Below, one piece after another: positions 1-63,102 of a stretch of DNA of 64,000 nucleotides. Location: sequence record OQ411014.1; one strand, given 5' to 3'. The position numbers were made by a program, and so were the translations under genes. The notes beneath the pieces are model-generated. The model did not search any database, was not told the DNA's origin, and was given only the letters and a program-made list of their open reading frames with translations. Position 1 is the first letter of the stretch; every line of letters starts with the position of its first letter.

Positions 1-2
1 TA

Positions 3-392
3 ACCATCAAGGATAAGACACAAATCTCCGAAATGTATGTTGGTGACTTGCGTTCTGTTATTGGTGAATACTTCAACGGTAAACAAGGTGTTACTGAGAA
101 ACAAGTAATGTCCTTTATCCAACAGCACATCCCGAACTTGGATAGTAAGATTTACCAAGAACTACTGGCAACGATTGAAGGTGGTCGTAAACAGTTCGCT
201 AACACACAGAAGTTGAAAATTGACCAGTGTGCATCGTATGATAAATTCCGTAAAAGTTTCTGGAATTCTAAAATCATCGATAACGGTACTTTCCCTGGTA
301 AGAACGTTGAACATTGGTGTACGGTAGTGTCTGACCAACAAACCCGAACAGCAATGCAAACTGGGATTCAAGAACCAATCAAATTTAGATAA
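3..392 (+). CDS. 5'-truncated phage protein, possibly LemA-like
   Basis: Frame stays open to the window edge; helical; followed by a terminator. LemA resemblance is an impression only. Confidence 0.45.
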   Translation, partial: TIKDKTQISEMYVGDLRSVIGEYFNGKQGVTEKQVMSFIQQHIPNLDSKIYQELLATIEGGRKQFANTQKLKIDQCASYDKFRKSFWNSKIIDNGTFPGKNVEHWCTVVSDQQTRTAMQTGIQEPIKFR

Positions 393-399
393 TAATACA

Positions 400-429
400 G
401 CGAAAGGTCATATGGCCTTTCGCTTTTTT
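400..429 (+). terminator. Rho-independent terminator
   Basis: gcgaaaggtca-ta-tggcctttcgc plus T6. Confidence 0.85.
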
Positions 430-442
430 GCGAGGAATACAT

Positions 443-1042
443 ATGCGTGAAGTACTGTTTACATTAGCTGATGGGTTAGCAACTTCCCATAAAGCAATCA
501 AAGAAACTAATCTATATAAAGAACTCAAACGATACAAATCTAACAATTTTAGTTATGTAGTAACGCCTGAAAATATTGAAATTTCTGCTCATGCTACATA
601 CACAGAACCGCCACCACCCAAGACTGGTCCAGCTTTGTCAACCAATAGTATTAGCGTTCCTAATGGTGCTATGACAGGCTACTACTTTTCAGGACCACAT
701 AATTATTTTATAAAGCTAAAACTCATTCTCAATGCATGGAATGAAGTTCTGAATATTCGCATAGTTCGCAATGTGAATAACCCCAACACTATCAACACTG
801 TAGGTTCGCACTCATTTACCATTACCAATGACGGTCAAAGTAACTACAGTCTAGAAGATGGTGGAGATCTTTTACATAACGTGCTATTTGTTGATAAAGA
901 CTATATCCTTTATGATGGGAAGGTGTATAATATCAATAGTTCTCCTACTGCATTCAATGAATCAATGTTCGGTGACACAATTACAGTACTGGATTTTGTG
1001 GAGATCAAAGAACGCTTTGAAGCTATCGTACGTGAAGGATAA
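443..1042 (+). CDS. hypothetical protein
   Basis: GAGG RBS before ATG 443. Confidence 0.7.
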   Translation: MREVLFTLADGLATSHKAIKETNLYKELKRYKSNNFSYVVTPENIEISAHATYTEPPPPKTGPALSTNSISVPNGAMTGYYFSGPHNYFIKLKLILNAWNEVLNIRIVRNVNNPNTINTVGSHSFTITNDGQSNYSLEDGGDLLHNVLFVDKDYILYDGKVYNINSSPTAFNESMFGDTITVLDFVEIKERFEAIVREG

Positions 1043-1046
1043 AAAA

Positions 1047-1520
1047 ATGTCAGAATTGTATGAAGAGTTTATTGAAGATGATGAAGCTGGTTACAACGAA
1101 ACACTAATTCATGGTGTTCGTGCATTGGTCAGTACTGGCATTCTAAAGAACATTAAGAGTGTTCAGGATGCAGTTCAATCTGGTTGTGCTTTCGAAATGG
1201 ATATCCTAGACAAAACTAATGTCTGGAATTCATTGAAGTGCAAAACCAATTACAACTCAATCTGTGTTGATTTTCTTTTACAGCCAGGAACACCCGAAAC
1301 CCGAAAAATGCATGTTGTATTCAGGGATGGTAAATGTATATTCTTTAGCGTTAGTATTCATGATATTGTCATGGACGTTGTTTTGTGTGATGATTCATTT
1401 ATGTTCAGCTATGGTGATAACATTACATATTCACATTTTGAAGAACATGAGTTCCAGTACTCTACATGTTCTGAAGCAGTCGCTTCTTTATTAGCACTAT
1501 CTAAAACTCGTAAGGAGTAA
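1047..1520 (+). CDS. hypothetical protein
   Basis: AAGGA RBS, ATG 1047 (the track's upstream extension overlaps the previous gene). Confidence 0.7.
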   Translation: MSELYEEFIEDDEAGYNETLIHGVRALVSTGILKNIKSVQDAVQSGCAFEMDILDKTNVWNSLKCKTNYNSICVDFLLQPGTPETRKMHVVFRDGKCIFFSVSIHDIVMDVVLCDDSFMFSYGDNITYSHFEEHEFQYSTCSEAVASLLALSKTRKE

Positions 1521-1523
1521 AAC

Positions 1524-1880
1524 ATGACTTGGATTTATCTTATTCTTTTATTCTCTGTAGTACTGTACCTTTTCTTTCTGAAAGGTGTTTCTGTAGTACT
1601 ACGCAAGATTGACAGTACTGAATGTGACGGTTCGATTGTGGATGTAATCATGGATTACCCACGTACAGTACTTGTGGGTTTATTTGTATTCTTGCTTATG
1701 TCCTTGTTTACTGTGCGTTATCAGATTGGTCAGATGTATGACTGTTCTGTTCGTAGTTCAGTACAGCAGGTACAAACGCAATATTCATGGTACTTTGATG
1801 TATGTCAGTTCAAGAACAAGTCCGGTGTTTGGATTGATTTCAAACAAGTTCGTGCTACACCGGATGGTGAGGAAGAGTAA
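1524..1880 (+). CDS. membrane protein (2 TM)
   Basis: AAGGAG RBS; two hydrophobic segments. Confidence 0.7.
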   Translation: MTWIYLILLFSVVLYLFFLKGVSVVLRKIDSTECDGSIVDVIMDYPRTVLVGLFVFLLMSLFTVRYQIGQMYDCSVRSSVQQVQTQYSWYFDVCQFKNKSGVWIDFKQVRATPDGEEE

Positions 1881-1886
1881 TATATA

Positions 1887-2363
1887 ATGTTCGAATTTGA
1901 AGAAGAGATTTATTTTGATCCTTCTGAAGATGGCTATACACACCTAAATGCGTATAGTAAAGGACGTACACGTTTGGGGAGGATGCTATCTAATTTTGCA
2001 TACTCCCCATTTGTGTTTGAGCCGTATGGTCACTTCAAATCGATGGAAGGATTCTGGTACTGGTACTGTACTGGTCAGAAGCATGATATTCTAAGAACCC
2101 TAAGTGGGGCGAAGGCCAAAGCTGAAGGCCAGAAGTTTCCTAGAGTGATTACATCAATGTCCGATGAAGATATCAGTACTATTCAAGATGCTATGGTAGC
2201 GAAGATAGTACAGAATAGTGAAATCAAAGATGCGTTGATGAAGTGTAATCTTGAGATAGTTCATTACTATGTATATGCAGGTAGGGTTGTACGATTAGAC
2301 CAGAAAGATGATTGGTTCGCAGAAACGCTGAACATGATTCGTGATGCATTACAGGGTAAATGA
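1887..2363 (+). CDS. NADAR-like protein (T4 gp30.3-like ADP-ribose hydrolase fold)
   Basis: LSNFAYSPF...F.SMEGFW and LSGAKAKAEG resemble T4 gp30.3 LSNFAQWPF...F..LEGFL and LSGLAAQQAG. Confidence 0.6.
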   Translation: MFEFEEEIYFDPSEDGYTHLNAYSKGRTRLGRMLSNFAYSPFVFEPYGHFKSMEGFWYWYCTGQKHDILRTLSGAKAKAEGQKFPRVITSMSDEDISTIQDAMVAKIVQNSEIKDALMKCNLEIVHYYVYAGRVVRLDQKDDWFAETLNMIRDALQGK

Positions 2364-2389
2364 GATGAAATGAAAAATTGTGATATAAT
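2360..2389 (+). promoter_or_regulatory. class II promoter ATGAGA-18-TATAAT with TGTGA
   Basis: Same architecture at 7 sites in the window. Confidence 0.75.
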
Positions 2390-2395
2390 CCTAAT

Positions 2396-2905
2396 ACAAT
2401 ACCAGTCCTTCGGGCGATACGTTCCCAGATTCGAAAAGTAGATGATGGATGAGCATGATGGTACATGCGAGTGCAGAGATACCCGTACGCGGCGTTTACG
2501 GCACGTTAAAGGAGCTTTTAGGCAGATAGGCTCCCTAGATAGGTAAACTGAAGGTCAACTTCACCATAATGCTAAGGGAGGCTCATATGAGCCACATGTA
2601 CGTTTGATCGAATAGACTGTACATGAAGTGGGCTAAGACCCCGACCGTTGCACATGACTGTGATAGAGAGAAACAGAGCAACCCGCTTTCGTTTCCTGAC
2701 CATTTTAGTACGGGTAAGTTGTATCTAAAATTCAGGAAAATTCACAATTCGATAATTCCGATGCTACCAGCGTCAGATTTAACATCCCCCCGTGGGGGAT
2801 GAAAATACCTCATCAAACCTCGTCAGGATATAAAGTACTAAAAGTGAATTGAGTTACGATAGTAACGAAAATTCTTTGACAATCGTAAGATTGGCGAATC
2901 AGAAC
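2396..2905 (+). ncRNA. large structured ncRNA, copy 1 (ROOL/GOLLD size class; family unassigned)
   Basis: No credible ORF; own promoter; many stems; blocks of 30/34, 21/22 and 32/36 nt identity to 45085-45640 in the same order. Confidence 0.8.
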
Positions 2906-2930
2906 CTTTACAACAATACAGGAATGAAGT

Positions 2931-3167
2931 ATGATAACAGCAATATGTGAAATGGCTGACCAAGCCAGTGGTATAAAAGATGTTAGATTGATAGAAAACA
3001 CATTACAAGCTATGCAAGATTATGAAGACTATTGTGATGATCAGATCATGTGTGGTTTGGGTTTTTGTGTATATTTCTTTGATACCGAGAAAGATATGAA
3101 AGGCTGGTCAGAAGATGATGTATATGAGTTTATGCGTATTAACGCTCACTTGGAGATTGAAGTATGA
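2931..3167 (+). CDS. acidic hypothetical protein
   Basis: AGGA RBS; overlaps next gene (ATGA). Confidence 0.65.
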   Translation: MITAICEMADQASGIKDVRLIENTLQAMQDYEDYCDDQIMCGLGFCVYFFDTEKDMKGWSEDDVYEFMRINAHLEIEV

Positions 3168-4105
3168 CTGAACTAAACAGAGCTAAAGGAAGTCTAATTG
3201 GATTAGCAGTAGGTGATGCAGTTGGAACGACTTTAGAGTTCAAAGTACGTGATGTCAAAAACATCACCGATATGGTAGGTGGTGGTCCGTTTAACCTCGA
3301 CGTAGGCCAGTGGACTGATGACACTAGTATGGCTCTTTGTTTGGGTTATGCACTTTTGCAAAATCATAATGTCAATGATATTGTTGATAGTATCAAGTGG
3401 TCACAAGTACAATTAGACAACTATGTAAAATGGTACATGAACGGTTACTGTAGTTCTAATGGATATTGCTTCGATATCGGAAGTACTACTCAAAGTGCAT
3501 TGCGTGCTTATATGAAAGATGGTGTCATTCGTAACAACGATCATTTCTTGGATTCAGGTAATGGTAGTCTTATGCGTCTTGCTCCAATTGCATTGTACTA
3601 TAACGCAAAGAATGTAGAAGAGTTCACAACTCTAGTGTATGCTGCTGACCTAAGTAGTACTACTACACATGCCAGTACTTTATGCCGTGAATCTTGTGTT
3701 GCATTTTCAGTACTACTCAATCGTGCTATCAATGGTATCGACGATAAGACTAAACTACTTGACTTCCCACCATCACTATGGAACGGTTTGGTGTCAGAGA
3801 AGTTAGTACTGGATGTGTTGAACGGTTCGTATAAGAATAAGACTCGTGAACAAATTAGTTCAAGTGGGTATGTTATTGATAGCCTAGAAGCCGCTCTATG
3901 GGCCTTCTGGAACACCGATAACTTCCGTGACGCTATCCTATTGGCTGCTAACTTAGGCAACGATGCAGACACTGTAGCGGCGATTACAGGGCAGATTGCA
4001 GGTGCTTTCTATGGTCTTGATGGTATCCCTGATGAATGGGTACAGAAGATTACAGCCACAGATGAAATCCAACAACTAGCTGAGGCTTTGTATAATGCAA
4101 ATTGA
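3164..4105 (+). CDS. ADP-ribosylglycohydrolase (ARH/DraG family)
   Basis: GLAVGDAVG, GQWTDDTSM, GNGSLMRLAP and LGNDADTVAAITGQIAGA motifs. Confidence 0.92.
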   Translation: MTELNRAKGSLIGLAVGDAVGTTLEFKVRDVKNITDMVGGGPFNLDVGQWTDDTSMALCLGYALLQNHNVNDIVDSIKWSQVQLDNYVKWYMNGYCSSNGYCFDIGSTTQSALRAYMKDGVIRNNDHFLDSGNGSLMRLAPIALYYNAKNVEEFTTLVYAADLSSTTTHASTLCRESCVAFSVLLNRAINGIDDKTKLLDFPPSLWNGLVSEKLVLDVLNGSYKNKTREQISSSGYVIDSLEAALWAFWNTDNFRDAILLAANLGNDADTVAAITGQIAGAFYGLDGIPDEWVQKITATDEIQQLAEALYNAN

Positions 4106-4541
4106 TAAGATTGTGAATGTCAAAATCGCACCAGGTCATAAAGTAACAATTGAACATACTTCGGTCGATACGCGTGAAACAATCGAAGCAGTTGTATCAT
4201 GTTCTACGCTAGATAATGGAAAAGGTGTTGCAGTCTTCAGTACTGAAGATGGTCAAGTCTTTACATGGAAACCTTCATTTTCTTCTTCACATGGGGAAGT
4301 AGTTCGAATTGATTCTGCACGTCCAGATGTTCTCGTCAATGCTTATGTAAGAGCATTCAGTACTGAAGTCCAACAGTACCGTCCGGTGCATGTAAATAGT
4401 GGTGAGTACACGTATACTGAAAAAGTATGTGAAACGCATAACTGGAGTGAAGCACTAGCACCACACGGTGATCATATATGTCTTGATTGTCGTATGGTAG
4501 TAAATGATAAATTTGAATTTGGAGTGTACTATGGGGATTAA
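4095..4541 (+). CDS. hypothetical protein with C-terminal Cys/His cluster
   Basis: CETH...HICLDC; overlapping gene arrangement. Confidence 0.65.
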   Translation: MQIDKIVNVKIAPGHKVTIEHTSVDTRETIEAVVSCSTLDNGKGVAVFSTEDGQVFTWKPSFSSSHGEVVRIDSARPDVLVNAYVRAFSTEVQQYRPVHVNSGEYTYTEKVCETHNWSEALAPHGDHICLDCRMVVNDKFEFGVYYGD

Positions 4542-4542
4542 C

Positions 4543-4764
4543 ATGTCGTACTGTATGTTTGAGAATACAGTGCGAGCATTAGAAGAAGTGTTAGAAAAGA
4601 TGTGGGAGCCGGATTTTGATCCTGATTCACTATCTTCACATGAGCGTCGTGCTTATAACCAACTCTATGAAATGGGTTCCTCTATTCACGCAGCAATCGA
4701 CGAGATCGAGGAACGCAAATATGATGAAGAACTAGCTAAACTGGATAAAGAAGATGACGAATAA
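4543..4764 (+). CDS. hypothetical protein
   Basis: GGGG RBS before ATG 4543. Confidence 0.65.
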   Translation: MSYCMFENTVRALEEVLEKMWEPDFDPDSLSSHERRAYNQLYEMGSSIHAAIDEIEERKYDEELAKLDKEDDE

Positions 4765-4960
4765 CATCCAGATGCCTTATATTATCACTGAACGTACAGT
4801 GATTGACATTGCTTACAATCCAGAGTATGGTGATAGTCGTATGTGTACTTGTGGTCATACATATGCACGTCATTTTGATTCATATGAAGATATGGACCCT
4901 GAAGGATGTAAGTACTGTGGTTGTATTGAATTTGTTGAAAAACTAAATAAGGACTTCTAA
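4754..4960 (+). CDS. small Zn-finger protein
   Basis: CTCGH...H...CKYCGC. Confidence 0.65.
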   Translation: MTNNIQMPYIITERTVIDIAYNPEYGDSRMCTCGHTYARHFDSYEDMDPEGCKYCGCIEFVEKLNKDF

Positions 4961-5460
4961 TGAAATATTATATGCTAAATGCAACTGATGCTAGTGGTCA
5001 TGGTAAAACTAATTTTTCTTACATTGACTTATCTGATAATAGTACTTTGGATGATGCGAAAGAAATCTTCTTAGAAGAGAACCCGTGGATTCAGTTCCAA
5101 GAAGTTGCTCGCATTACTGCACTGGAAATCGACCACAAAACCTATAAGGCAGGTTTGGCATTCAATGAATATGCACAGTACTGTCAAGATAAAGAATACG
5201 ATGAAGTGTACCAAGCAGCAACTGGTGAACACCCGTACCGAAACCCTAAATACACAAACAATCGTCTGTGGGAGCACCATAATATGTTTCCTACACGCAA
5301 ATGGGCTGAGATGCTCGCAGATCCAACCAAACCAGTACTGATCGGTTATCCGAAGATGTTTTCTGTGTTCAAGATGGACGATAAACGAAACCTACATTTC
5401 GTATATCATCATAGCAGTACTATTGACTTCCGTGATGATGCACGATTTGTCAAACAGTGA
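4960..5460 (+). CDS. hypothetical protein
   Basis: TAATG coupling to the previous gene. Confidence 0.7.
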   Translation: MKYYMLNATDASGHGKTNFSYIDLSDNSTLDDAKEIFLEENPWIQFQEVARITALEIDHKTYKAGLAFNEYAQYCQDKEYDEVYQAATGEHPYRNPKYTNNRLWEHHNMFPTRKWAEMLADPTKPVLIGYPKMFSVFKMDDKRNLHFVYHHSSTIDFRDDARFVKQ

Positions 5461-5468
5461 GATAGATA

Positions 5469-5738
5469 ATGGCAGTAAGACGTTACCCTGGTATATTTGA
5501 GTACTACAATAGTACTCAATTTGAAGAACATACTCAAGACAGCACAGTACTGATTAATACGTACTGGATTTGTACTGACATGGACTTCATGAAAAGTATA
5601 AAACAAGGTGTGTGGCAATACCATAGCAATAAAGGTGTAGCTGAATCAATCAGTTCACAACTACCAGGAACGACAGTACGTTTTATGGAATTTGCATATA
5701 TACCAAAAGAACCAAAGAGGATTGACAATGCAAAATGA
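5469..5738 (+). CDS. hypothetical protein
   Basis: ORF in tightly packed operon. Confidence 0.6.
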   Translation: MAVRRYPGIFEYYNSTQFEEHTQDSTVLINTYWICTDMDFMKSIKQGVWQYHSNKGVAESISSQLPGTTVRFMEFAYIPKEPKRIDNAK

Positions 5739-6060
5739 AGAGTATATTATTAGGTGTGAATGTGGTGACAAGACCGACCATGTGATTCATATCGCACAGT
5801 ACGATATCGGTGAAGATTGTGGTGATGATTCAATGGGTCAATGTGTCGTGTCATTACGTTTAGACCCACGTGCTTTCTGGTACAAGCGTGTGTGGTTGGC
5901 GTTCAAATACATCTTCGGTATTGGTAATCATTACCAGTATGTTGATACGTATATTGATGTTCAGTCATTGAAAGAAGTTGCTGAATCTTTGAAAGATACT
6001 CGTTCCGATGAACACAAAGAAGAAGCAAAAACTGATAAGACCATTCCAAAGGTATACTAA
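5728..6060 (+). CDS. hypothetical protein
   Basis: GAGG RBS before ATG 5728. Confidence 0.65.
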   Translation: MQNEEYIIRCECGDKTDHVIHIAQYDIGEDCGDDSMGQCVVSLRLDPRAFWYKRVWLAFKYIFGIGNHYQYVDTYIDVQSLKEVAESLKDTRSDEHKEEAKTDKTIPKVY

Positions 6061-6245
6061 TGGACAATTCGAAAGAATATAAGTACTGTACAGAATGTAC
6101 TTATGCTTTCACGTTTATGTCCGATAGAATATGCCCTAATTGTGGTGAAATGGACAGTACTGAAATATGTACTCGTCCATCACAATCGATAGACATTAGT
6201 CGATACCTAACATTGAAAGCTATGAAAGGACGTAAACAGTGCTAA
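6060..6245 (+). CDS. small Zn-ribbon protein
   Basis: CTEC...CPNC. Confidence 0.6.
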   Translation: MDNSKEYKYCTECTYAFTFMSDRICPNCGEMDSTEICTRPSQSIDISRYLTLKAMKGRKQC

Positions 6246-6637
6246 ACATTTACAATGAACTAATTGAACTTGATTTTTTCAAGAATCCAGCCCGTAAGAC
6301 AAGTACTGAATCATTCTTTGAAAAAGAATTCATGATGCATCTAATGTTTGAAGATGAATACAGTGATGATTCAGTGAATAGTATTCTAGTAGTGAAGGAT
6401 TTATCTGAAGGAAATCTCTCACACATCAATGTCAGTACTAATCGCTGTATGCTCCAGTACTCCAATGATACTGGAATGATTGCTATTGTCAGAGCTAATG
6501 TTTCTGAAGATTTATTCGTACCAATAGCGTGTGATGAAGGTCAGTTCTTTCAGCTTATGGTACTGGAGGATTTGGGGAAGATTACACATGAATATGTGAA
6601 ATTAGTTCAAGATGTTTATGCAATTTTGAGCAAATGA
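6239..6637 (+). CDS. family A protein (C-terminal EExFQ motif)
   Basis: DEGQFFQLMVLED. Confidence 0.7.
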   Translation: MLNIYNELIELDFFKNPARKTSTESFFEKEFMMHLMFEDEYSDDSVNSILVVKDLSEGNLSHINVSTNRCMLQYSNDTGMIAIVRANVSEDLFVPIACDEGQFFQLMVLEDLGKITHEYVKLVQDVYAILSK

Positions 6638-6655
6638 AATATATTGTGATATAAT
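6626..6655 (+). promoter_or_regulatory. class II promoter TTGAGC-18-TATAAT
   Basis: TGTGA before -10; shared architecture. Confidence 0.7.
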
Positions 6656-6665
6656 AAGGATATGT

Positions 6666-7646
6666 ATGTACGATACGTGTTTTGTGAGTAACGCACCAAT
6701 CACCCCAGGTGACCATGTGAAGTTATTCTATATCGCTGAGAAACGTGATATTTACGATACGAATCCACCAATGAAAAATAAAGGTGCAGGACAAACGTCC
6801 TGTACTGAAGATTATCTCATCATTGGATTTCCGGTTGAAGCAGTATATGATGAAGATGGGGATTACCAACACATTGATTATCCTGGATTTGAAGCTGAAT
6901 ACGTTCGTGATGTGATCACATCTCATTTAGCTTACGGATTCAGTGCAGTGATTGATTTTGGTGAAGCAACGTTATATACTCTTGATAAAATCATTCAAGA
7001 TGAGCAATTGGTTGTATCTCGCAATGGTATCCGCTCAAGGGTTCATAGAGTTGCAGTACTGGATTATATCTATGAAACAGTCCAAGATACGATTGACCCA
7101 TTTATACTGAGTTCGAATTCGTTCAAGCATTTAGCTAAAGCGTCAGTGAAACATAGTTATGCAATGTCATCTAAGACTGAATCAGTACAGCAATGGGCTA
7201 CTGAAAATGATAAGTACGTAAAGTTAGAGAAGATTCAAGACGCACAGGCTGACCAGTTCAAGTTCATTCATGCACTTGATGTTGTGAATACTAAGATACG
7301 ACCATCGTCACAAGTCAGTTCCACATATCATTTGGATAAAATTGCTTCATATCATTTACGCCTAGCACAGATTATGTTGCAGAAAGAATCCAGATTCTAT
7401 GCAAATACAAAATTCAATTTACAAGTGTGTAAGTGCATTACTCTGAAAGATTTAGAAGAGTTCTTCACTAATCACTATGACAGCGAAGTATATGAGAATG
7501 GTCTTTATGCGATAGAACGCTATAAGGAGCTATTCCAGTACGAATCACTTTATCTGGATTATGAATCGAGTAAAGCCTTACGCTTTGAGGTATTCTTTGA
7601 AGCCGTTGACGATCCCACTGTTCCTATCAAAGTGATAGTTACATAA
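6666..7646 (+). CDS. hypothetical protein
   Basis: 326 aa ORF with AAGGA RBS. Confidence 0.75.
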   Translation: MYDTCFVSNAPITPGDHVKLFYIAEKRDIYDTNPPMKNKGAGQTSCTEDYLIIGFPVEAVYDEDGDYQHIDYPGFEAEYVRDVITSHLAYGFSAVIDFGEATLYTLDKIIQDEQLVVSRNGIRSRVHRVAVLDYIYETVQDTIDPFILSSNSFKHLAKASVKHSYAMSSKTESVQQWATENDKYVKLEKIQDAQADQFKFIHALDVVNTKIRPSSQVSSTYHLDKIASYHLRLAQIMLQKESRFYANTKFNLQVCKCITLKDLEEFFTNHYDSEVYENGLYAIERYKELFQYESLYLDYESSKALRFEVFFEAVDDPTVPIKVIVT

Positions 7647-7718
7647 AAATTTACAATTATATGTAAATACGTACAGATGTAGAGGTTTTTTCTTTACATC
7701 TGTGCTATGGGAGAATAA

Positions 7719-8045: not shown

Positions 8046-8047
8046 TA

Positions 8048-8605: not shown

Positions 8606-8613
8606 ATAAATTT

Positions 8614-8643: not shown

Positions 8644-8681
8644 ATAAGTACAGGAGATGAGAGTTCTCCTGTAACAAATTA

Positions 8682-10521: not shown

Positions 10522-10530
10522 GGATATATA

Positions 10531-54742: not shown

Positions 54743-54749
54743 GGTATGT

Positions 54750-55082: not shown

Positions 55083-55090
55083 CATCATAA

Positions 55091-55124
55091 AAGGGTTGAC
55101 TTCGGTCAGCCCTTTCTGTATTAT
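55091..55124 (+). promoter_or_regulatory. terminator/promoter hybrid
   Basis: aagggTTGACTtcggtcagccctttctgTATTAT; 17 bp spacer. Confidence 0.8.
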
Positions 55125-55151
55125 ACATACATCAACTGAGAGGATAATTAA

Positions 55152-55580: not shown

Positions 55581-55612
55581 ACTATATCTAACTTAACAGA
55601 GGAATCAAACAA

Positions 55613-56224: not shown

Positions 56225-56229
56225 TTGAA

Positions 56230-56826
56230 ATGCTATTCAATAAAAGTAATTATTTTTCAGTACCGAAGGTTTCTGGCAAACCGCTCCAAATGACTTTTGA
56301 TATGAATATCAGTACTATATTCTATAATTTGCTTCGCATTCAAAATAATGATAAAGAGTTCGTCTTGGGTAAAGCAGCAATTTACAATTCAGATGATATT
56401 CCTTTGATTTGTGATTTTGATAAAATTCTTGAAGCAGCACGTTCAGCCACCAGTAGAGTATATAAATTCACTGTTTGTGATTTGTCACAGAAGGTACTTG
56501 ATTATAGTTTCTATATGGATGAAGAAAGTTTGAAGGTAAGTATCACAAATATCATCAATGCAGACATTACCCTTGATAAGAAACCGCACCTTTCGATCAC
56601 AGATAATGAGACTGGGGAAACTCGAAGTGGTACTGTGAATGAAATTTATGATCATTACTTCCATGCACAGATTGCACCTAAAAATGATTCTACTATGTCT
56701 GTAGTACTGGACATGGAAGAAGTACTGAATGAAATGCGTCCTATTATTCAGAATGGTACTGACGTAGAAAAGTCCAACGCAAAAGCAATCCTGGCGTATG
56801 TTGCAGCTAAATTGGCTAAACAATAA
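56230..56826 (+). CDS. family C protein (C-terminus shared with 61302-61964)
   Basis: LDMEEVLNEMRPIIQNGTDVEKSNAKAILAYVAAKLAKQ. Confidence 0.75.
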   Translation: MLFNKSNYFSVPKVSGKPLQMTFDMNISTIFYNLLRIQNNDKEFVLGKAAIYNSDDIPLICDFDKILEAARSATSRVYKFTVCDLSQKVLDYSFYMDEESLKVSITNIINADITLDKKPHLSITDNETGETRSGTVNEIYDHYFHAQIAPKNDSTMSVVLDMEEVLNEMRPIIQNGTDVEKSNAKAILAYVAAKLAKQ

Positions 56827-56863
56827 AAGAAAAAAGGAGACTTTGTAGTCTCCTTTCTTTTTA
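56826..56863. terminator. bidirectional terminator
   Basis: aaaggagact/agtctccttt flanked by A- and T-tracts between convergent genes. Confidence 0.85.
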
Positions 56864-58039
56864 TGGTAAATCAAATTCCGTATATGAATATTTGTATACA
56901 CCATCTGGTCCACGACCTGAGTATCGTAATTTACCAGAAGTAGTTATATATGCTGAAGTAATATTACTAGTACTGAATATGTTAAACACTGACTTCATAT
57001 CATTCACTGTACCGTTACCGAATGGTATCAGGTTAAGTTCATTGCCGTTGACACCAGTACTCAATCTTCCTGAAGAATTTGCTCCACAACCATATGCATT
57101 TGATGGGCTAAGAGCAACGTAACCAGTATTACTAGTATAATAACTTAGTAAACCAATAAAATTCTCTGTAGTGGCTATTTCAGTAAAGACTCTAATATTG
57201 ACAGAACTATTCACTCCATTACCTAAGTTTCCAGCATTCTGGCTTCCCGCAGCATATAGATGTGTTTTACCAGTACCGTCACTGTACAATATTGTGAATG
57301 CTGATTCAGTTAGACCAATATCAAAAACACTAAGACCTGGGTCTGGTAGTGGTACTTGTGTTAGCACATTTATTCTTGTATCTGGATGACCAATACCGAG
57401 TTGACCAAATGAGTTTGAACCTGAAACCCAAACACTTAAATCATTTTTTAATATCAGTACTGATGAATTAACAAATTCAACTTTTTGAACATCTGATGTA
57501 AGTTTTGAGAAAGTAGTTAGTGCAAGATAATTACCAGTTGCTAGTTGGCCTTGGTTATTAAAACCGCTTCTATAAAGATCACCATTGTTCATTAATATAT
57601 ATAATGCATATACACCAGCATGAACAGATGTTATTTGATTAAGATTCCCTGTACCTATACCAGCTTCAATAAATGGGGTACAATCAGTATATGATGTCAC
57701 AACTTCAGTAGATGATGTATTGCCAGTTTGAAAGCTACGGCGACCAGTATATAATAATTTTCCATCCATAGTTTTAATGATAACAAAACTTGTGTTTGTA
57801 CACCAAACATCTTGAACATCATCTCTGATTAAAGTCCACTCTAGCTTTTGTTCTGTTGGCTTTCCATCCCCATAGATATAATTATCAACTGTTCCTCCAC
57901 CGATACCATACAATCTGTTATCATCATATAATACCATAAATGCCGGACGAGACGATGCATAAGGTACTAATATTTTTGTAATTTCAGGTAATGAAGGTGC
58001 TTTATTACCATAATTAAGCATTCGTACAAAAGGTAACAT
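56861..58039 (-). CDS. RCC1/BLIP-II-like beta-propeller repeat protein, probably virion-associated
   Basis: Repeated G.N..GQL(G/A).G units; MLPFVRMLNYGN N-terminus of the kind recalled from this phage group; GGAG RBS. Confidence 0.8.
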   Translation of the reverse strand: MLPFVRMLNYGNKAPSLPEITKILVPYASSRPAFMVLYDDNRLYGIGGGTVDNYIYGDGKPTEQKLEWTLIRDDVQDVWCTNTSFVIIKTMDGKLLYTGRRSFQTGNTSSTEVVTSYTDCTPFIEAGIGTGNLNQITSVHAGVYALYILMNNGDLYRSGFNNQGQLATGNYLALTTFSKLTSDVQKVEFVNSSVLILKNDLSVWVSGSNSFGQLGIGHPDTRINVLTQVPLPDPGLSVFDIGLTESAFTILYSDGTGKTHLYAAGSQNAGNLGNGVNSSVNIRVFTEIATTENFIGLLSYYTSNTGYVALSPSNAYGCGANSSGRLSTGVNGNELNLIPFGNGTVNDMKSVFNIFSTSNITSAYITTSGKLRYSGRGPDGVYKYSYTEFDLP

Positions 58040-58085
58040 AATTAAATCTCCGTCTAATAATTATAATGTATTTACCAAAAAGGAC

Positions 58086-58114
58086 TTGACAGTACTGAAC
58101 AGTACTAGTAGAAT
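58086..58114 (+). promoter_or_regulatory. sigma70 promoter TTGACA-17-TAGAAT with two AGTACT in the spacer
   Basis: Read directly. Confidence 0.8.
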
Positions 58115-58148
58115 TGTATCCAAGATAACTCACTAAGGAATATCCAAA

Positions 58149-58439
58149 ATGACAACTGTTACTTATTATCAAACACGCCGCCTTTTTGACATGACTGAAG
58201 GGCGTGGCCCAATGATCAATGATTTGGCATTCACTGAGTACCGCCATGCTGAAGCATACATCAACTCCCAACCTGGTGTTATGGGTCGTCGCTGTAACTG
58301 GACACAAGAGCGTCATGCGTCTGACTGGGACATTCAAACAGTACACGCCAGGACTGAAGCCTATGATCCACAAGAAGAAGCACGTCAGCGTGCATTAGCT
58401 AAACTAACCAAAGAAGAACGTAAACTACTAGGACTCTAA
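58149..58439 (+). CDS. early hypothetical protein
   Basis: AAGGA RBS. Confidence 0.75.
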   Translation: MTTVTYYQTRRLFDMTEGRGPMINDLAFTEYRHAEAYINSQPGVMGRRCNWTQERHASDWDIQTVHARTEAYDPQEEARQRALAKLTKEERKLLGL

Positions 58440-58440
58440 T

Positions 58441-58653
58441 ATGACAGTACAACTAAAAACTTATAAAGAAGATGATAAAACATATGTAGCTACTGGTTTT
58501 ATCAAAGACAATGGCTTCCATCGTGCACACGATCAACGTCAATACACAGCAGAACGTGCTGGCGGTGAAGTACTCAACACTGACAGCTATGATGATGCAT
58601 TAGCTTTCATTGCTGCCGGACTAGGTAAACCAGAGCGGTTATATACGTTATGA
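58441..58653 (+). CDS. hypothetical protein
   Basis: AGGA RBS. Confidence 0.65.
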   Translation: MTVQLKTYKEDDKTYVATGFIKDNGFHRAHDQRQYTAERAGGEVLNTDSYDDALAFIAAGLGKPERLYTL

Positions 58654-58916
58654 AATACATTCTAGTACTTCTAAGTATCTTCTTTCTTACGGCATGTGAA
58701 CCGGAAGAAGAACGTGAAGAACGTATTGATGCGAAGTATCTGGTGGCGAATGATTGTAAGTACACTGGCGAATCCTTTATAAACGAAGAAACCATTATGG
58801 TGGGTCCAGCCCGTTTCTCTAGGCCAGAGGTCGTTGAGAAGCGTTATTACGTGTATAAATGCAGTCAAGAGCGGAAGGTTCTCGCTACAGTTCGATTTGA
58901 AATTGAAAAAGAATAG
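58650..58916 (+). CDS. small lipoprotein
   Basis: Lipobox LTAC. Confidence 0.75.
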   Translation: MKYILVLLSIFFLTACEPEEEREERIDAKYLVANDCKYTGESFINEETIMVGPARFSRPEVVEKRYYVYKCSQERKVLATVRFEIEKE

Positions 58917-58953
58917 TTGACACACAATGGGAGTACTGTATAATACTCCCATC
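58917..58953 (+). promoter_or_regulatory. sigma70 promoter TTGACA-16-TATAAT with -10 inside a hairpin
   Basis: atgggagta/tactcccat. Confidence 0.75.
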
Positions 58954-59143
58954 TTAACGACAAAAGAGGAATTGAAATGGAACGTGTATACTTGAACGTA
59001 ATCACTGGTGCTAAACGTAAGTTCATCGGCAAAGAAGGATATTTCTGGATGAACAATAAGCAGTGGGTTCCTAATGGTACATCAGAAGAACTCATCAAAG
59101 CATTACCATATTACAAAGTACTCTAACTATAGGAATCAATCCC

Positions 59144-59791
59144 ATGCTCAAAGATATATCAATTGATGTAGATGCACTGAATGAAGAGTACAAAGATAAA
59201 GGGATTGATTTTTTTGAAACCGTAAGGGAAAACCCAATTAATGGTTCAAAACTACAAGTTACAATGGGAGTTGTTAATCCATTACATCCAGCAATACAGG
59301 CAAAGAAACTACCTATTAGTACTAAACCAATACGCCTTATGCTCGCGGCACATTGTAGTACTGGTATCTATATGGGATTCCCATTACATGAAACTATTCG
59401 CAAGTACAGCAAAAGCGAAGTTGTTTCTCGTATGGTTGAGTTTGATTTGAGTACTGGAATGTGGTATGATTCTCATGAAGTGGCACAGTCCTTCAATGAG
59501 AAGGAATTACCTTCTGGAAAGGCTCCTGCCGATATTACTCGCTTGAGTAGTTCTTATGGTTTAGCTGATAACATCAAGCAAATCATCAAGCACTACAGAA
59601 AAGTAATTAACAGGAGTGACTTCAATGTAGTGCTGCATATTACGTACAACAATGAAAAGCAACTGGCTGGATTGCGTTGGCATAAATGCGGGAAGTACTT
59701 GGGTAAGCATAAACAGAAGCACGAATACTTAGAAGAAGATAATATAAAGAGTATTCTACAATTCCACCTTTATGTACTGAAGGAGGACTAA
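59144..59791 (+). CDS. hypothetical phage protein
   Basis: AGGA RBS; YG.AD..Q, RWHK.G.Y.G and FH.Y motifs. Confidence 0.7.
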   Translation: MLKDISIDVDALNEEYKDKGIDFFETVRENPINGSKLQVTMGVVNPLHPAIQAKKLPISTKPIRLMLAAHCSTGIYMGFPLHETIRKYSKSEVVSRMVEFDLSTGMWYDSHEVAQSFNEKELPSGKAPADITRLSSSYGLADNIKQIIKHYRKVINRSDFNVVLHITYNNEKQLAGLRWHKCGKYLGKHKQKHEYLEEDNIKSILQFHLYVLKED

Positions 59792-59955
59792 ATGAATCAT
59801 GATAAGATTCAAGAAATTGAAGAGAAGCGTAATCACTTAAACGCACTCACGTATGAAATGACACAGACTGCTGATGTGGTGATGGGAGTATTATCAACAT
59901 CCGCAGTTCTTTCAGTACTGATAGCGATTTATATATTTTTCTTGTCATGAAGTGT

Positions 59956-59984
59956 TTGACAATCTTAGTATCATCTAGTATGAT
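59956..59984 (+). promoter_or_regulatory. sigma70 promoter TTGACA-17-TATGAT
   Basis: Near consensus. Confidence 0.7.
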
Positions 59985-60016
59985 GTTTGTACTATAATGA
60001 TATAAGGAAATACAAA

Positions 60017-60262
60017 ATGAAATTTATTAGTGCAATTATTCTTTCGATGACTTTATTGGTTGGATGTTCAACTGATTTCATGAAAGAAGCATACGTTGGT
60101 GAAGTGAATGGACGTACAATCGTCTTCTTCAAAGATATCCAACGTAACGGTATGCAGTACTACACTCCGCAGTTTGCATCTGTATGCCGTGATATGTTCG
60201 GGGTAAGTTCACCATGTAGGATAAAAGAAACTGCAATCAAAAACATTCGTCCATACAAATAA
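60017..60262 (+). CDS. small lipoprotein
   Basis: Lipobox LVGC; AAGGA RBS before ATG 60017. Confidence 0.75.
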   Translation: MKFISAIILSMTLLVGCSTDFMKEAYVGEVNGRTIVFFKDIQRNGMQYYTPQFASVCRDMFGVSSPCRIKETAIKNIRPYK

Positions 60263-60273
60263 GGAAACACAAT

Positions 60274-60597
60274 ATGTTTATTCTTTCTTTCCCACTGTTC
60301 GTTCTGCTTATCTGTTATATTGCAGTAGTAGCAGTAGGTTCTAAGTACAAAGATCTCCCTGAATATCTGAACATTGGTGACGGTCAAACAAATTCGCTAC
60401 GCTTTGTTCTGGGTGCAACGTTTGTATCATTAGGGTTCCAAATTCTTGGTCTGTTCTTTGCGTTTGCAATTAGTCTAGGACTGTTGTTTTCAACTATTGC
60501 TTCAGTCCTTGCGTGGTGGTGGTTGTTTGAAACATTCCAGTCTGGTAAGATCAAGATCTGGTACAAAGATGCTAAAGCATATTTCGATCAGGACTAA
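60274..60597 (+). CDS. membrane protein
   Basis: AAGGA RBS; 3 TM. Confidence 0.7.
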   Translation: MFILSFPLFVLLICYIAVVAVGSKYKDLPEYLNIGDGQTNSLRFVLGATFVSLGFQILGLFFAFAISLGLLFSTIASVLAWWWLFETFQSGKIKIWYKDAKAYFDQD

Positions 60598-60652
60598 TTG
60601 ATTCATTGTTTCATCGGGGTTAACATGTGTTAGCCCTTTTTTGTAGGTAATA

Positions 60653-61036
60653 ATGCGAGCGATGATTAGTATAGATAAGAAAGGTGCAACTCGGATTGTA
60701 TTCTTGACGAAGAGATACGCAATCAAGATACCATCTTTCTATTCGTGGAAAATGTTCTTACATGGATTGATTGCTAATCTAAATGAAAGAGCATTCAAAG
60801 AGTACTCATGTTCTCCTGGTTCTGGATTATGCCCTACTGTATATGCGTCAGGAACGGGTCTAATAAGCATTCAGAAGAGATGTTTACCAGTACAGCACAG
60901 AGGTATGTTCTGGGTGGAATTGGCTCACCTAGCGTGCAGTACTGTACTACATGAGGACTTCTTTTATTCGGATGCGAAGCCTGAGAACTTCGGGTATATA
61001 GATGGGAAGTTAGTAAAATTGGATTACGGAGATTGA
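60653..61036 (+). CDS. minimal protein-kinase-like protein
   Basis: GATRIVF, YAIKIP, N..E, DAKPENFG, KLDYG in only 127 aa. Confidence 0.7.
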   Translation: MRAMISIDKKGATRIVFLTKRYAIKIPSFYSWKMFLHGLIANLNERAFKEYSCSPGSGLCPTVYASGTGLISIQKRCLPVQHRGMFWVELAHLACSTVLHEDFFYSDAKPENFGYIDGKLVKLDYGD

Positions 61037-61037
61037 T

Positions 61038-61226
61038 ATGCTAATTTACAATAACAATGGTATTAGAGTACTTCAGCATGAATACTTACAAGTGTTTCAT
61101 GTACAGAAGTTCATGGAGGGTGATAATCCTCGGAGCTATGGTCGTACGATGGATTACTTCACTGTAAAGGAATGCTATAGTATTCAAGAAGTTCGTGAAG
61201 TTGTATCTGAATTACTTGAAGAATAA
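61038..61226 (+). CDS. small hypothetical protein
   Basis: GGAG RBS. Confidence 0.6.
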   Translation: MLIYNNNGIRVLQHEYLQVFHVQKFMEGDNPRSYGRTMDYFTVKECYSIQEVREVVSELLEE

Positions 61227-61233
61227 TATTAGA

Positions 61234-61269
61234 AAGGGGTTGACTTCGGTCGGCCCTTTTTGTTATAAT
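61234..61269 (+). promoter_or_regulatory. terminator/promoter hybrid
   Basis: ggggTTGACTtcggtcggccc ttttt gt TATAAT; 18 bp spacer. Confidence 0.8.
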
Positions 61270-61301
61270 CATTACATCGACAACCAATAGGAAATCTAAA
61301 A

Positions 61302-61964
61302 ATGCCAATTCCATTGTTTCATGAAAGTAATACATTCACTATCTACAAAAATAATGGCGAACTGAAGACTATTCACTTCACTGGTCACAAAGTAGGTTTG
61401 TATTACAAGTTGTATTCAATCCTACGTAAGAGTCACAACTTCAATATGCCTTCAGTAACTGTACGTGATATTACAGGGCGGGTATTATCCAATGGAAACT
61501 TCTTGGATATCTATTTTGAGTTGATTGATGTATTGAAAGCAGAACACAAGTACTCAATCATGACGACCAATAGTGTTGGTGAAGATCTATATCACTTCCG
61601 TGATGAACCTGAAGGTGTACTGCAACAACTGAAGCATCTGAGAGATACATATACTAAAAATGGTGATCCGCGTCGTTTTGAATATCACACAGTAGTACGA
61701 AGAGATGACTCATCGTTTATTCGTAACAAGTTGGATTATTTGATTATAGAATACCAGAAAATTGCTGATGCAGAGAACTCAGAGAAAGCTGGCGAAACCG
61801 ACTGCATTGGTGAAACTGGCGAAATGGGGTTAGGTGTGTACCTGGAGTTCGATGAAGTAGTGAACGATATGCGTGAGCAAATCAAATCAGGTACTGACAA
61901 AGAGAAGATTGAAGCTAAAGCAGTACTGTCATATATCGCTACTAAAATAGCACTGAAACAGTAA
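61302..61964 (+). CDS. family C protein
   Basis: LEFDEVVNDMREQIKSGTDKEKIEAKAVLSYIATKIALKQ. Confidence 0.75.
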   Translation: MPIPLFHESNTFTIYKNNGELKTIHFTGHKVGLYYKLYSILRKSHNFNMPSVTVRDITGRVLSNGNFLDIYFELIDVLKAEHKYSIMTTNSVGEDLYHFRDEPEGVLQQLKHLRDTYTKNGDPRRFEYHTVVRRDDSSFIRNKLDYLIIEYQKIADAENSEKAGETDCIGETGEMGLGVYLEFDEVVNDMREQIKSGTDKEKIEAKAVLSYIATKIALKQ

Positions 61965-61969
61965 AATAA

Positions 61970-62004
61970 AAGGGTTGACTTCGGTCGGCCCTTTTTGCTA
62001 TAAT
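61970..62004 (+). promoter_or_regulatory. terminator/promoter hybrid
   Basis: agggTTGACTtcggtcggccc ttttt gc TATAAT; 18 bp spacer. Confidence 0.8.
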
Positions 62005-62034
62005 CATTTCAACTTCTGATGAAAGGAAAATTAT

Positions 62035-62283
62035 ATGTTCGCACTACGCCACAAAGAAACAAAGAACTTCATGTGTATTGATACACAGTGGGATTGCTTT
62101 GGTAGTACTGAAGTATTGGAAGAACACGCTGAGAACGTCTTTGTTGTTAGTGAACGTTCATTGTTGGAAGCACTAATTGAGGACTTCAATGCTGGTACTA
62201 ATGCATTCTCTCTGAACTTTCCGGTTGTTGCAGATCCAGAAGCATTTGTTATGTACGAAATTGTAGAACTTACTGTGAAATAG
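62035..62283 (+). CDS. hypothetical protein
   Basis: AAGGA RBS. Confidence 0.7.
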   Translation: MFALRHKETKNFMCIDTQWDCFGSTEVLEEHAENVFVVSERSLLEALIEDFNAGTNAFSLNFPVVADPEAFVMYEIVELTVK

Positions 62284-62300
62284 TATCATTGGAGATAACC

Positions 62301-62597
62301 ATGAAAGCACTGACCGCCGTAGAAATCAAAGAGCAATACAAAGATTTATTCGAGTTTAAACACAACGGTGAAGAATTCAAACGTAGTAGTACTGTACGTG
62401 ACTTCTTGAACAAACTCTTCTGTACTAAGTTCAAAGCTGCGTACATTACTATGCCTGAGCGTACTTCAAGTGCAGAAGATATCAAGAAGTTCGGTTTAGG
62501 TTGGGATGCACAATCAATCATCCTGGTGAATGCAGATGAAGAGCTAGTGTACTTGACTAACTCCGAGTGGGCTTCTTTCATGTATCTTCGTAAATAA
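62301..62597 (+). CDS. hypothetical protein
   Basis: GGAG RBS before ATG 62301. Confidence 0.7.
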   Translation: MKALTAVEIKEQYKDLFEFKHNGEEFKRSSTVRDFLNKLFCTKFKAAYITMPERTSSAEDIKKFGLGWDAQSIILVNADEELVYLTNSEWASFMYLRK

Positions 62598-62606
62598 GGA
62601 ACTATA

Positions 62607-62789
62607 ATGAAACTGAAACGTTATGACCGCAATCGTATTATGGATGCTTTGTATCGTGAAGAAATTTCACTCAATAAGGTGAAAGTGTACTTTATGTTAG
62701 AAGGACGGCTTCCAGCACGTAAAGCTAAACAGTTAGCTATTGAACTGTTGAACGAAGGTATTGAGTACTGGCATTATGACGGATATTGA
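62607..62789 (+). CDS. small hypothetical protein
   Basis: AAGGA RBS. Confidence 0.65.
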   Translation: MKLKRYDRNRIMDALYREEISLNKVKVYFMLEGRLPARKAKQLAIELLNEGIEYWHYDGY

Positions 62790-62800
62790 TTTGTGAAATA

Positions 62801-62834
62801 AAAGGTTGACTTCGGTCAGCCTTTTTCGTATTAT
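62801..62834 (+). promoter_or_regulatory. terminator/promoter hybrid
   Basis: aaaggTTGACTtcggtcagcc ttttt cg TATTAT; 17 bp spacer. Confidence 0.8.
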
Positions 62835-62865
62835 GTACTCATCGAAACGAAGGAGATATAAAAAA

Positions 62866-63102
62866 ATGAAACTATCTTTTATACGATTGGGTCAATTCTT
62901 CGGTACTAATGTTATAACTTTACAACAAATTGCAGATAATACATCTCTAACGATTCAAGAAGTACTTGACTTGGATGACATAAATTACGATACTACATGT
63001 ATCGAGTACAAAGAAGGTCTTATCGAAAAGGATAAGATTCAGGCTAAAATTAATGGTGCTGGAAAAGTTCAGTACTGGAAGGGAGTGTTAAGTAATGTGT
63101 AA
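62866..63102 (+). CDS. hypothetical protein
   Basis: AAGGAG RBS before ATG 62866. Confidence 0.7.
   Translation: MKLSFIRLGQFFGTNVITLQQIADNTSLTIQEVLDLDDINYDTTCIEYKEGLIEKDKIQAKINGAGKVQYWKGVLSNV

Follow-up and report, generated by a model that had tools for sequence, protein, structure and literature searches.

AGTACT in a window of the EJP2 genome

The stretch of DNA analysed here ("the window") is 64,000 nt long and corresponds, by sequence identity, to positions 248001-312000 of Escherichia phage EJP2 (OQ411014.1), a 349-kb Rak2-like jumbo myovirus classified under Asteriusvirus. Its GC content is 37.1%, and not roughly 35% as given in an earlier note made from the sequence alone. It contains 145 genes, mostly small, on the plus strand and of unassigned function, along with six tRNA genes, one gene for a C5 DNA methyltransferase and one for an RpoD-like sigma factor. 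Dispersed through it are copies of the palindrome AGTACT, the recognition site of ScaI, which are the subject of this study.

451..63076, no strand: 241 scattered AGTACT sites, including 86 full octamers, CAGTACTG; mean spacing 261 bp, near-Poisson
4234..4249, no strand: extended palindrome TCTTCAGTACTGAAGA, inside a gene
22895..22910, no strand: extended palindrome TATTCAGTACTGAATA, in intergenic DNA

The 241 copies compare with 21.9 +/- 5.1 in dinucleotide-preserving shuffles, which reached 38 at most (z = 47 under an order-1 Markov model). The earlier note had inferred a strong excess from partial counts and had pointed to both extended palindromes; the palindromes are present, and the excess is larger than it had stated. 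AGTACT is the top-ranked hexamer by count in the window as well as in the whole 349-kb genome, which was assembled for counting from the public record and holds 1,312 copies against 127 expected, 425 of them within the octamer. The runner-up palindrome in the window, CGTACG, reaches only 2.8x (order-1 Markov), and some 25 six-base palindromes are missing from it altogether; AGTACT thus stands out where other palindromes have been purged to zero, the contrast to which the note had drawn attention. The first site starts at 451 and the last at 63071, with 10 to 19 sites in every 4 kb, so that the density is indeed maintained to the end of the window. Recounting the first 10 kb gave 37 sites rather than the 36 reported, 22 of which are preceded by C, as reported. 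Genome-wide, the density ranges from 2-3/kb in conserved core and structural genes to 6-7/kb at both ends. The 30-nt context is unique for 241 of the 241 window sites, ruling out inflation of the count by repeats.

Markov, synonymous-shuffle and codon-permutation nulls rule out a codon, dinucleotide or peptide artefact. The window genes contain 217 sites, as opposed to 62 +/- 6 when synonymous codons are shuffled within genes and 27 +/- 5 when codons are permuted; codon usage alone is insufficient, as had been argued from the sequence. The excess persists under the codon and dinucleotide nulls that the earlier note had named as its test, and no other hexamer comes near it. Also as claimed, sites occur in all three reading frames (85 as Ser-Thr, 85 as Val-Leu and 46-47 as x-Tyr) and in intergenic DNA, at 3.5/kb as compared to 3.8/kb in coding DNA. 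The claim that they also lie in RNA stems was not confirmed: the six tRNA genes contain none, and a few intergenic hairpins at most are involved.

A symmetric signal in DNA

C is found at position -1 of 57% of the sites and G at +1 of 55%; beyond these, weak information is present as T at -3 and A at +3. Pooling the half-site flanks yields the consensus TTCAGTACTGAA (of which TTCAGTATTGAA is a one-base mutant), the TTC flank, GAA on the other side, being 5.3x enriched; the consensus occurs 35 times in the genome as a 12-mer. The optimum motif is CAGTACTG plus weak TT/AA flanks. Enrichment is graded, from 2.4x for GTAC through 4.6x for AGTAC to about 10x for AGTACT, and the A and T flanking GTAC co-occur (odds ratio 2.85). 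The C-1/G+1 preference is seen in all three frames and peaks in intergenic DNA (75% and 71%); it is therefore a property of the DNA and implies symmetric reading. No excess complementarity over the marginal-frequency expectation was found at flank positions +-2 to +-6. This lack of covariation speaks against selection for a hairpin or cruciform and in favour of two half-sites that are read independently.

Distances between sites are approximately Poisson-distributed. Only the 11-bp distance is over-represented, and it derives from promoter cassettes (see below). Regular spacing or periodicity was therefore rejected, as was a LexA-box-like pairing of sites, since the 18-bp spacing it needs is not over-represented. 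Sites are uniformly distributed along genes, and the 25 bp upstream of start codons are nearly empty (1 site, 13 expected).

The pressure for AGTACT is visible in codons and proteins. Ser-Thr dipeptides are encoded AGT-ACT in 64% of cases (15% expected), and sites fill 54% of the x-Val-Leu and 48% of the (Gln/Lys/Glu)-Tyr-x opportunities, where 11-12% would be expected. The ST, VL and QY dipeptides are themselves over-represented 1.7-2.0x, among the highest, unlike the reversed TS, LV and YQ. It follows that the signal in the DNA has changed protein sequences. AGT, raised by the motif, makes up 30% of Ser codons, and a tRNA that decodes it is encoded in the window.

19102..19191, plus strand: tRNA-Ser, anticodon ACT, decodes AGT; 121Q has the same tRNA

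A second tRNA-Ser (GCT) lies at 20451-20540. The tRNA set may be adapted to the motif.

Sites embedded in promoters

Some 20 copies of an early sigma70 cassette, AAAGTAC-TTGCAC-AGTACTG-N9-TATAAT, are found at the EJP2 genome ends, each with two sites, 11 bp apart, flanking the -35 element on both sides. Among promoter-like matches, the offsets of AGTACT from the first base of the -35 hexamer are fixed (-5, +5/+6 and +15), and the same offsets recur in 121Q, CBB, GAP32 and Hallingskeid. About 110 of the 1,312 sites (~8%) are in promoter-like arrangements. The window has at least seven such promoters, including the following.

10965..10993, plus strand: sigma70-like promoter TTGAC-AGTACT-N12-TATAAT, AGTACT fused to the -35 element; layout also found in EJP2, 121Q and Hallingskeid
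26701..26728, plus strand: sigma70-like promoter TTGACA-N8-AGTACTGATATAAT, AGTACTG just upstream of the -10 element
37050..37078, plus strand: sigma70-like promoter TTGAC-AGTACT-N12-TATAAT
46723..46750, plus strand: sigma70-like promoter TTGACA-N8-AGTACTGATATAAT
58917..58944, plus strand: sigma70-like promoter TTGACA-N9-AGTACTGTATAAT
41759..42751, plus strand: phage RpoD-like sigma factor with Pfam matches to regions 2 and 3, none to region 4

The early cassettes are about 93 nt long and lie at 338-349 kb and 1-9 kb of EJP2 (sampled loci L093, 26000-37185, and L088, 1-9000). Their order is an UP-like A-tract, AGTAC-TTGCAC-AGTACTG, TATAAT, a GC-rich hairpin, GAGAGCGGGAAnnnTTCCCGC, and then a small gene. 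The absence of a Pfam region 4 from the sigma factor bears on the reading of promoters that lack a -35 or have an extended -10 element. The protein provides context for the promoter-embedded sites; no role as reader of the motif is claimed for it.

Distribution among relatives and turnover of sites

AGTACT is enriched 5-13x in every Rak2-like genus sampled (121Q, PBECO4, RaK2, CBB, GAP32, XbC2, Hallingskeid, Munch and Eneladusvirus pEa_SNUABM_50). No enrichment was seen in the distant jumbo phages PA5oct (3 sites, 14 expected) and Atu_ph07 (3, 7 expected), in phage T4 (4, 8 expected) or in a 50-kb sample of E. coli K-12 (3, 5 expected), so that a phage density of 3.8/kb contrasts with about 0.06/kb in the host sample.

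The fate of individual sites was followed in codon alignments of 16-17 core genes from six genomes (third-position identity 0.52-0.65). Amino-acid-compatible positions are occupied at 35-55% in all six. Of 64 fully aligned site positions, 35 are occupied in a single genome and 6 in all six. At positions with a common amino-acid context, the presence of a site in one genome is predictive of its presence in the other, with a frequency of 0.61-0.81 as opposed to 0.13-0.42. Conservation of AGTACT is about 0.40, compared to about 0.18 for composition-matched hexamers (179 control words of identical composition); the difference holds in 15 of 15 genome pairs (odds ratios 1.9-3.4) and places AGTACT third among 163 hexamers. 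On terminal branches, 46 gains and 29 losses were inferred, and some gains required several substitutions, such as a switch of Ser codons from TCN to AGT. The picture is one of many weakly selected, interchangeable sites kept at a set density. The proposal that the signal is kept by selection thus finds support in a roughly twofold conservation over controls, with new sites still arising.

Unrelated prophages share the motif and the loss of GCGC

A scan of IMG/VR for tight AGTACT clusters returned Rak2-like contigs plus a family of contigs of about 31-33 kb in which AGTACT is 17x enriched (4-5 sites/kb) and GCGC is absent. By tblastx these contigs have no similarity to EJP2; their genes include those for a portal of the lambda family and a terminase of the gpA type. 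They are prophages of Leclercia and Enterobacter. In Enterobacter bugandensis (locus L165), the AGTACT/GCGC counts are 41/1 in the prophage part and 1/81 in the host flank: the signature ends at the prophage-chromosome junction and belongs to mobile DNA rather than to the host mutational background. An Escherichia sp. prophage with 41% terminase identity carries it too (58 AGTACT, 5.6 expected; 0 GCGC of 42 expected), and an Atlantibacter prophage with 45% terminase identity does not. AGTACT flank preferences are alike in all signature-bearing lineages. With the prophage genomes sampled to about two-thirds, the only protein detected in common with EJP2, apart from a lysin, was an HNH homing endonuclease; the signature arose in lineages without common machinery. 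The endonuclease (EJP02_181), which is sporadic yet found in as many as 1,505 phage records, was rejected as a reader on that account. Given that unrelated lambda-like prophages of ~31 kb bear the same signature, the binding activity that the earlier note had suggested, a nucleoid or packaging protein of a jumbo phage, is no longer the obvious candidate. Three other IMG/VR contigs of 14-26 kb (L133, L134 and L129; 22 AGTACT against 3.7 expected, 19 against 2.9 and 15 against 3.3; no GCGC) may represent further independent lineages.

GCGC is absent from the window (42 expected), from the whole EJP2 genome (266 expected) and from every Rak2-like locus sampled (L003, L083-L087, L094, L098, L099); its frequency is normal in PA5oct, Atu_ph07, T4 and E. 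coli. Of the 119 informative loci, 21 combine AGTACT richness with a lack of GCGC, 93 show neither feature and 5 are mixed; included host flank explains one of these five. GCGC is one of dozens of restriction sites at or near zero throughout the clade, including CAGCTG, CTGCAG, GTCGAC, GCATGC, GGTACC, GAGCTC, CTCGAG, GGATCC, CTCCTC and GAGACC; AAGCTT is purged in EJP2 only. The Rak2-like phages follow an extreme site-avoidance strategy on unmodified DNA, and the set of avoided sites, unlike AGTACT, differs with the host across the clade. With so many sites purged, general restriction avoidance suffices to explain the absence of GCGC, which need not point to a special phage nuclease. CCWGG, present at 1.3x in EJP2, is missing from Salmonella phage Munch (L098; 16 expected) and from Atu_ph07 (L096; 34 expected), a host- or lineage-specific avoidance of EcoRII-type sites.

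Other palindromes are over-represented in unrelated phage contigs from IMG/VR (L052, L058, L030, L026): AGATCT (28 copies, 5.7 expected), GGATCC (16, 2.4 expected), TCCGGA (13, 2.4 expected) and ACCGGT (11, 2.1 expected, and 9, 1.3 expected). Iterated palindromes may be commoner in phages than recognised. As a separate observation, the EJP2 large terminase (195164-197800; 45164-47800 of locus L091) is annotated at 878 aa, as compared to about 545 aa in relatives, and the matches to its N-terminal third are proteins that other phage genomes list as DarB-like, helicase or HNH. The extra length may reflect an insertion, an intein or a gene fusion.

DNA methylation

The earlier note had likened AGTACT to the cyanobacterial HIP1 palindrome and its methyltransferases, and the window does encode an enzyme of this type.

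12761..13618, plus strand: C5-cytosine DNA methyltransferase, 285 aa; PF00145, E = 2e-38; all catalytic motifs present

Orthologues 59-85% identical are present clade-wide; the second EJP2 methyltransferase is Dam-type. When native and amplified DNA were compared by nanopore sequencing, modification was found only at GATC and CCWGG in Hallingskeid, the closest relative of EJP2, and at GATC, CCWGG and TGCAT in Kaldavass (PMC11780129). The CCWGG mark in these relatives is 5mC, and none was reported at AGTACT (PMC11780129), of which both genomes contain well over 1,000 sites. DNA of phage fEgEco12 was cut by ten enzymes as predicted. CCWGG is not avoided in EJP2 (1.2-1.4x), which fits a Dcm-like specificity, and the window enzyme, a candidate writer for AGTACT, is more probably Dcm-like (CCWGG). 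Moreover, some 70 unrelated phages with C5 homologues 34-50% identical show no AGTACT excess. These unenriched phages and the relatives' methylomes speak against the enzyme as the AGTACT writer and weaken the link to HIP1 that the conserved enzyme had seemed to support. A ScaI-type restriction-modification system would leave the site protected or avoided; AGTACT is enriched and no modification of it is reported in the relatives.

Maintenance by biased repair, also raised in the earlier note, finds no support: a repair sink would require a depleted neighbour word, and all one-mismatch neighbours of AGTACT escape depletion (AGTATT, for example, stands at 1.0-1.3x). A Vsr-like gene was not seen either, and a small "endonuclease" considered for this role turned out to be Endo VII-like.

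A proposed recognition motif with a putative host-side reader

The interpretation that we prefer, at a probability of roughly 40%, is that AGTACT serves as a recognition motif under positive selection, present in double-stranded DNA that is unmodified and read by a dimeric protein, and that the reader is most likely host-side. Three features fit the protein-binding sites that the earlier note had envisaged: a consensus of 8-12 bp that is both graded and symmetric, a lack of hairpin covariation, and fixed placement in early promoters. A two-fold-symmetric (dimeric) protein or enzyme would read AGTACT as a symmetric 8-12-bp site, and sites would be scattered near-randomly, about one per 270 bp, wherever coding constraints permit. 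The same motif and the same GCGC purge occur in prophages without a plausible shared reader gene; the reader is therefore most likely common to the hosts. It would be a protein common to Enterobacterales or else the product of a small transferable gene outside the sampled DNA. We infer that the motif might act as a palindromic, orientation-free counterpart of Chi, a dense tag meaning "treat this DNA favourably" whose effect would depend on density. Where sites form part of early sigma70 promoters, the reader, once bound, would cover some of the -35 element or of the spacer.

Several findings speak against this interpretation. The eleven clade-conserved window proteins have no recognisable DNA-binding domain, and the small conserved proteins of the window were discarded as binders, being all acidic and devoid of such domains. 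The one known enterobacterial binder of AGTACT-centred sites, the E. coli protein SlmA, an Enterobacterales host protein whose 12-bp palindrome GTGAGTACTCAC has the same core, needs G-T-R flanks that the phage sites lack. In an SlmA site, half-site positions 1-3, which flank AGY, must be G, T and a purine (PMC3020112), whereas the phage half-sites prefer T, T/A and C; of 2,624 half-sites, 13 carry a GTG flank, and 2 of 1,312 full sites fit GTNAGTACTNAC. Titration of SlmA is ruled out by this mismatch. The negative result on methylation comes from DNA of two relatives, Hallingskeid and Kaldavass, rather than from EJP2 DNA. Most coliphages, T4 among them, and the related Atlantibacter prophage do without the signature, so that any benefit in these hosts is not general. 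XbC2, recorded as a Xanthomonas phage, carries the full signature of the enterobacterial phages (L086). (XbC2 is reported to be 84.6% similar to Erwinia phage Kaldavass, and its host assignment or range may need revision.) The amino-acid context is no better conserved at occupied than at unoccupied sites; selection per site is therefore weak, and a conversion bias dependent on the reader could mimic selection. Finally, the prophage genomes, sampled to about two-thirds, may yet contain a small shared reader gene.

A more specific version of the host-side reading, which we offer tentatively and consider somewhat doubtful, is that several unrelated Enterobacterales phage lineages converged on a dense, unmethylated CAGTACTG tag read by a conserved host DNA-handling or defence activity. 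The tag would then constitute a second, orientation-free, Chi-like "friend" signal exploited by mobile DNA and coupled to the complete avoidance of GCGC, which the same hosts would attack.

Alternative explanations

A serious alternative, rather unlikely in our estimation yet backed by the promoter placements, is that the reader is encoded by the phages themselves. An abundant dimeric DNA-binding protein residing on mobile elements, possibly spread horizontally, would coat or mark phage DNA; it could serve to tell phage from host DNA, to organise or protect the genome, or to silence early promoters in the manner of phi29 p6 and the stoperator repressors. The trait boundary matches a phage clade, and in L165 the signature goes with the element and not with the chromosome. 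The 11-bp site pairs around the -35 element in the ~20 cassettes, with offsets conserved in four relatives (see above), would suit such a protein, as would the 40-60x density contrast between phage and host and the otherwise unmodified state of the DNA, which, unlike that of T4, has no chemical self-mark. Nevertheless, the Rak2-like phages and the prophages, with their identical flanks, share only the sporadic HNH endonuclease and a lysin, and the clade-conserved window proteins lack a recognisable DNA-binding domain.

It seems improbable that AGTACT is an entry or cleavage site for an enzyme such as a type II topoisomerase, a nicking or recombination nuclease or a primase, its density speeding replication, decatenation or recombination-dependent replication. 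In favour are the symmetry of the site about its 4-bp core and the 4-nt stagger of A^GTAC^T, the geometry of a type II topoisomerase; EJP2 encodes T4-type topoisomerase II subunits, a primase-helicase, gp46/47 and the Endo VII-like nuclease, and near-random spacing would suit a density-type requirement. However, none of these enzymes is encoded in the DNA sampled from the lambda-like prophages that bear the signature. Gene conversion should erode a cleavage hotspot, whereas gains outnumber losses (46 against 29), and the nanopore study, which found nicks in another phage, reported none for members of the clade (PMC11780129).

We consider a HIP1-like model very unlikely. In this model the window C5 methyltransferase would mark AGTACT, and methyl-directed or very-short-patch-type biased repair would create the palindrome as well as maintain it. 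The intact enzyme is conserved clade-wide, cyanobacterial HIP palindromes co-occur with cognate methyltransferases (PMC4390886), and G:C<->A:T changes at the only G:C pairs of the motif are prominent among the alternative states of sites (AGTATT, 20 cases; AATATT, the top double variant, 12). Against this stand the modification of GATC, CCWGG and TGCAT only in the two relatives, a CCWGG frequency that fits a Dcm-like enzyme, the ~70 unenriched phage loci with homologues, and the lack of both a depleted neighbour word and a visible Vsr-like gene. In addition, the prophages, as far as they were sampled, yielded no homologue of the enzyme.

Little credit can be given to the idea that AGTACT is a by-product of restriction-site purging, in which CpG transitions on both strands of GCGC would yield GTAC (AGCGCT to AGTACT), or in which AGTACT would simply be the sole palindrome left unselected. 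The two signatures are indeed coupled (21 loci with both, 93 with neither, 5 mixed), GCGC loss is complete (0 of 266 expected) and the AGTGCT/AGCACT intermediates are mildly enriched (1.5x). Yet the excess of GTAC, about 1,990, far exceeds the 266 missing GCGC sites, and the coupling is therefore not a simple conversion of one into the other. Enrichment of the one-step sinks falls far short of that of the two-step product, the A/T, C/G and TT/AA flank preferences are left unexplained, sites arise from unrelated sequences, including the Ser TCN-to-AGT switches, and locus L081 is GCGC-free without being enriched in AGTACT. Least credible of all is a signal in RNA or in structure (AGUACU as a nuclease site or small hairpin in transcripts, or cruciform extrusion): nearly all window genes lie on one strand, so that every site is transcribed, and some intergenic sites fall within longer inverted repeats, but the flank preferences are reverse-complement symmetric despite one-way transcription and show no complementarity covariation, spacers and genes have equal densities, and tRNA genes have no sites.

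Comparison with known systems

AGTACT is close to HIP1 (GCGATCGC) and the alternate highly iterated palindromes of cyanobacteria; HIP1 is a hyper-abundant short palindrome whose function has been unexplained for decades (30 years). Like HIP1, which occurs about once per gene in all frames and in non-coding DNA, AGTACT is at least 10-fold over-represented genome-wide in coding DNA, in every frame, and in non-coding DNA. That HIP1 sites exceed composition-matched controls in conservation is evidence of selection (PMC5861425), and the same holds for AGTACT. HIP1 is GC-rich, chromosomal and restricted to cyanobacteria, whereas AGTACT is AT-rich, resides on phages and prophages and stops at the prophage border. 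HIP1 is tied to cognate methyltransferases that methylate it (PMC4390886); AGTACT is apparently unmethylated. The 10-90 kb quasi-periodicity of HIP-type sites is beyond the reach of a 349-kb genome, and the short-range spacing of AGTACT is near-Poisson.

Chi (GCTGGTGG), too, is a short over-represented word on DNA favoured by host machinery. It is a known host-read protective motif, asymmetric and orientation-dependent, read as single-stranded DNA by RecBCD. EJP2 contains 37 copies of Chi, and the window 3 (0.46 expected), an over-representation of about 7-10x. This excess of a host-read word counts in favour of the preferred interpretation.

12002-12009, 27499-27506 and 50915-50922: copies of Chi, GCTGGTGG

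In core genes of both EJP2 and pEa_SNUABM_50, CTGGTG ranks with the top hexamers. Unlike Chi, AGTACT is a palindrome with symmetric flanks, and it is about 35x denser than Chi in EJP2.

The uptake sequences of Pasteurellaceae and Neisseriaceae (USS/DUS) resemble AGTACT as self-tags lying inside genes, with a peptide bias and fast turnover at a stable density of about 1 per kb. However, they are 9-12-mers without palindromic symmetry, and their reader is the competence machinery of the same cell; the carriers of AGTACT are viruses, without any uptake process. The stoperators of cluster A mycobacteriophages and the p6 sites of phi29 share with AGTACT the large number of sites over a phage genome, some overlapping promoters, where they silence. 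A genome has about 30 stoperators, asymmetric 13-mers that follow the direction of transcription, lie mostly between genes and are bound by a known repressor, as opposed to 1,312 mostly genic palindromes with no binding protein among the conserved window proteins. Protein p6 recognises the bendability of DNA and not its sequence.

No description of AGTACT or CAGTACTG in phages was found in the literature, including full texts on phages of the clade, in line with the earlier note's statement that it knew of none in a jumbo phage. AGTACT is of a kind with HIP1, Chi and the uptake sequences and differs from them in its carrier, its symmetry, its apparent non-methylation and its convergent distribution.

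If a protein reads the motif, then some 1,300 sites per genome shape the codons, amino acids and tRNA set of jumbo phages that are therapeutic candidates. Because unrelated temperate phages have converged on the signature, with the prophage edge as its exact limit, the problem is a tractable one. The AGTACT-rich, GCGC-free combination constitutes a cheap, alignment-free marker with which to find such phages and delimit prophages in assemblies. The signal would also offer a far simpler experimental model for HIP1-type palindromes, and it could expose a new host-phage interface, be it a protective or recruiting DNA signal or a defence neutralised by the motif.

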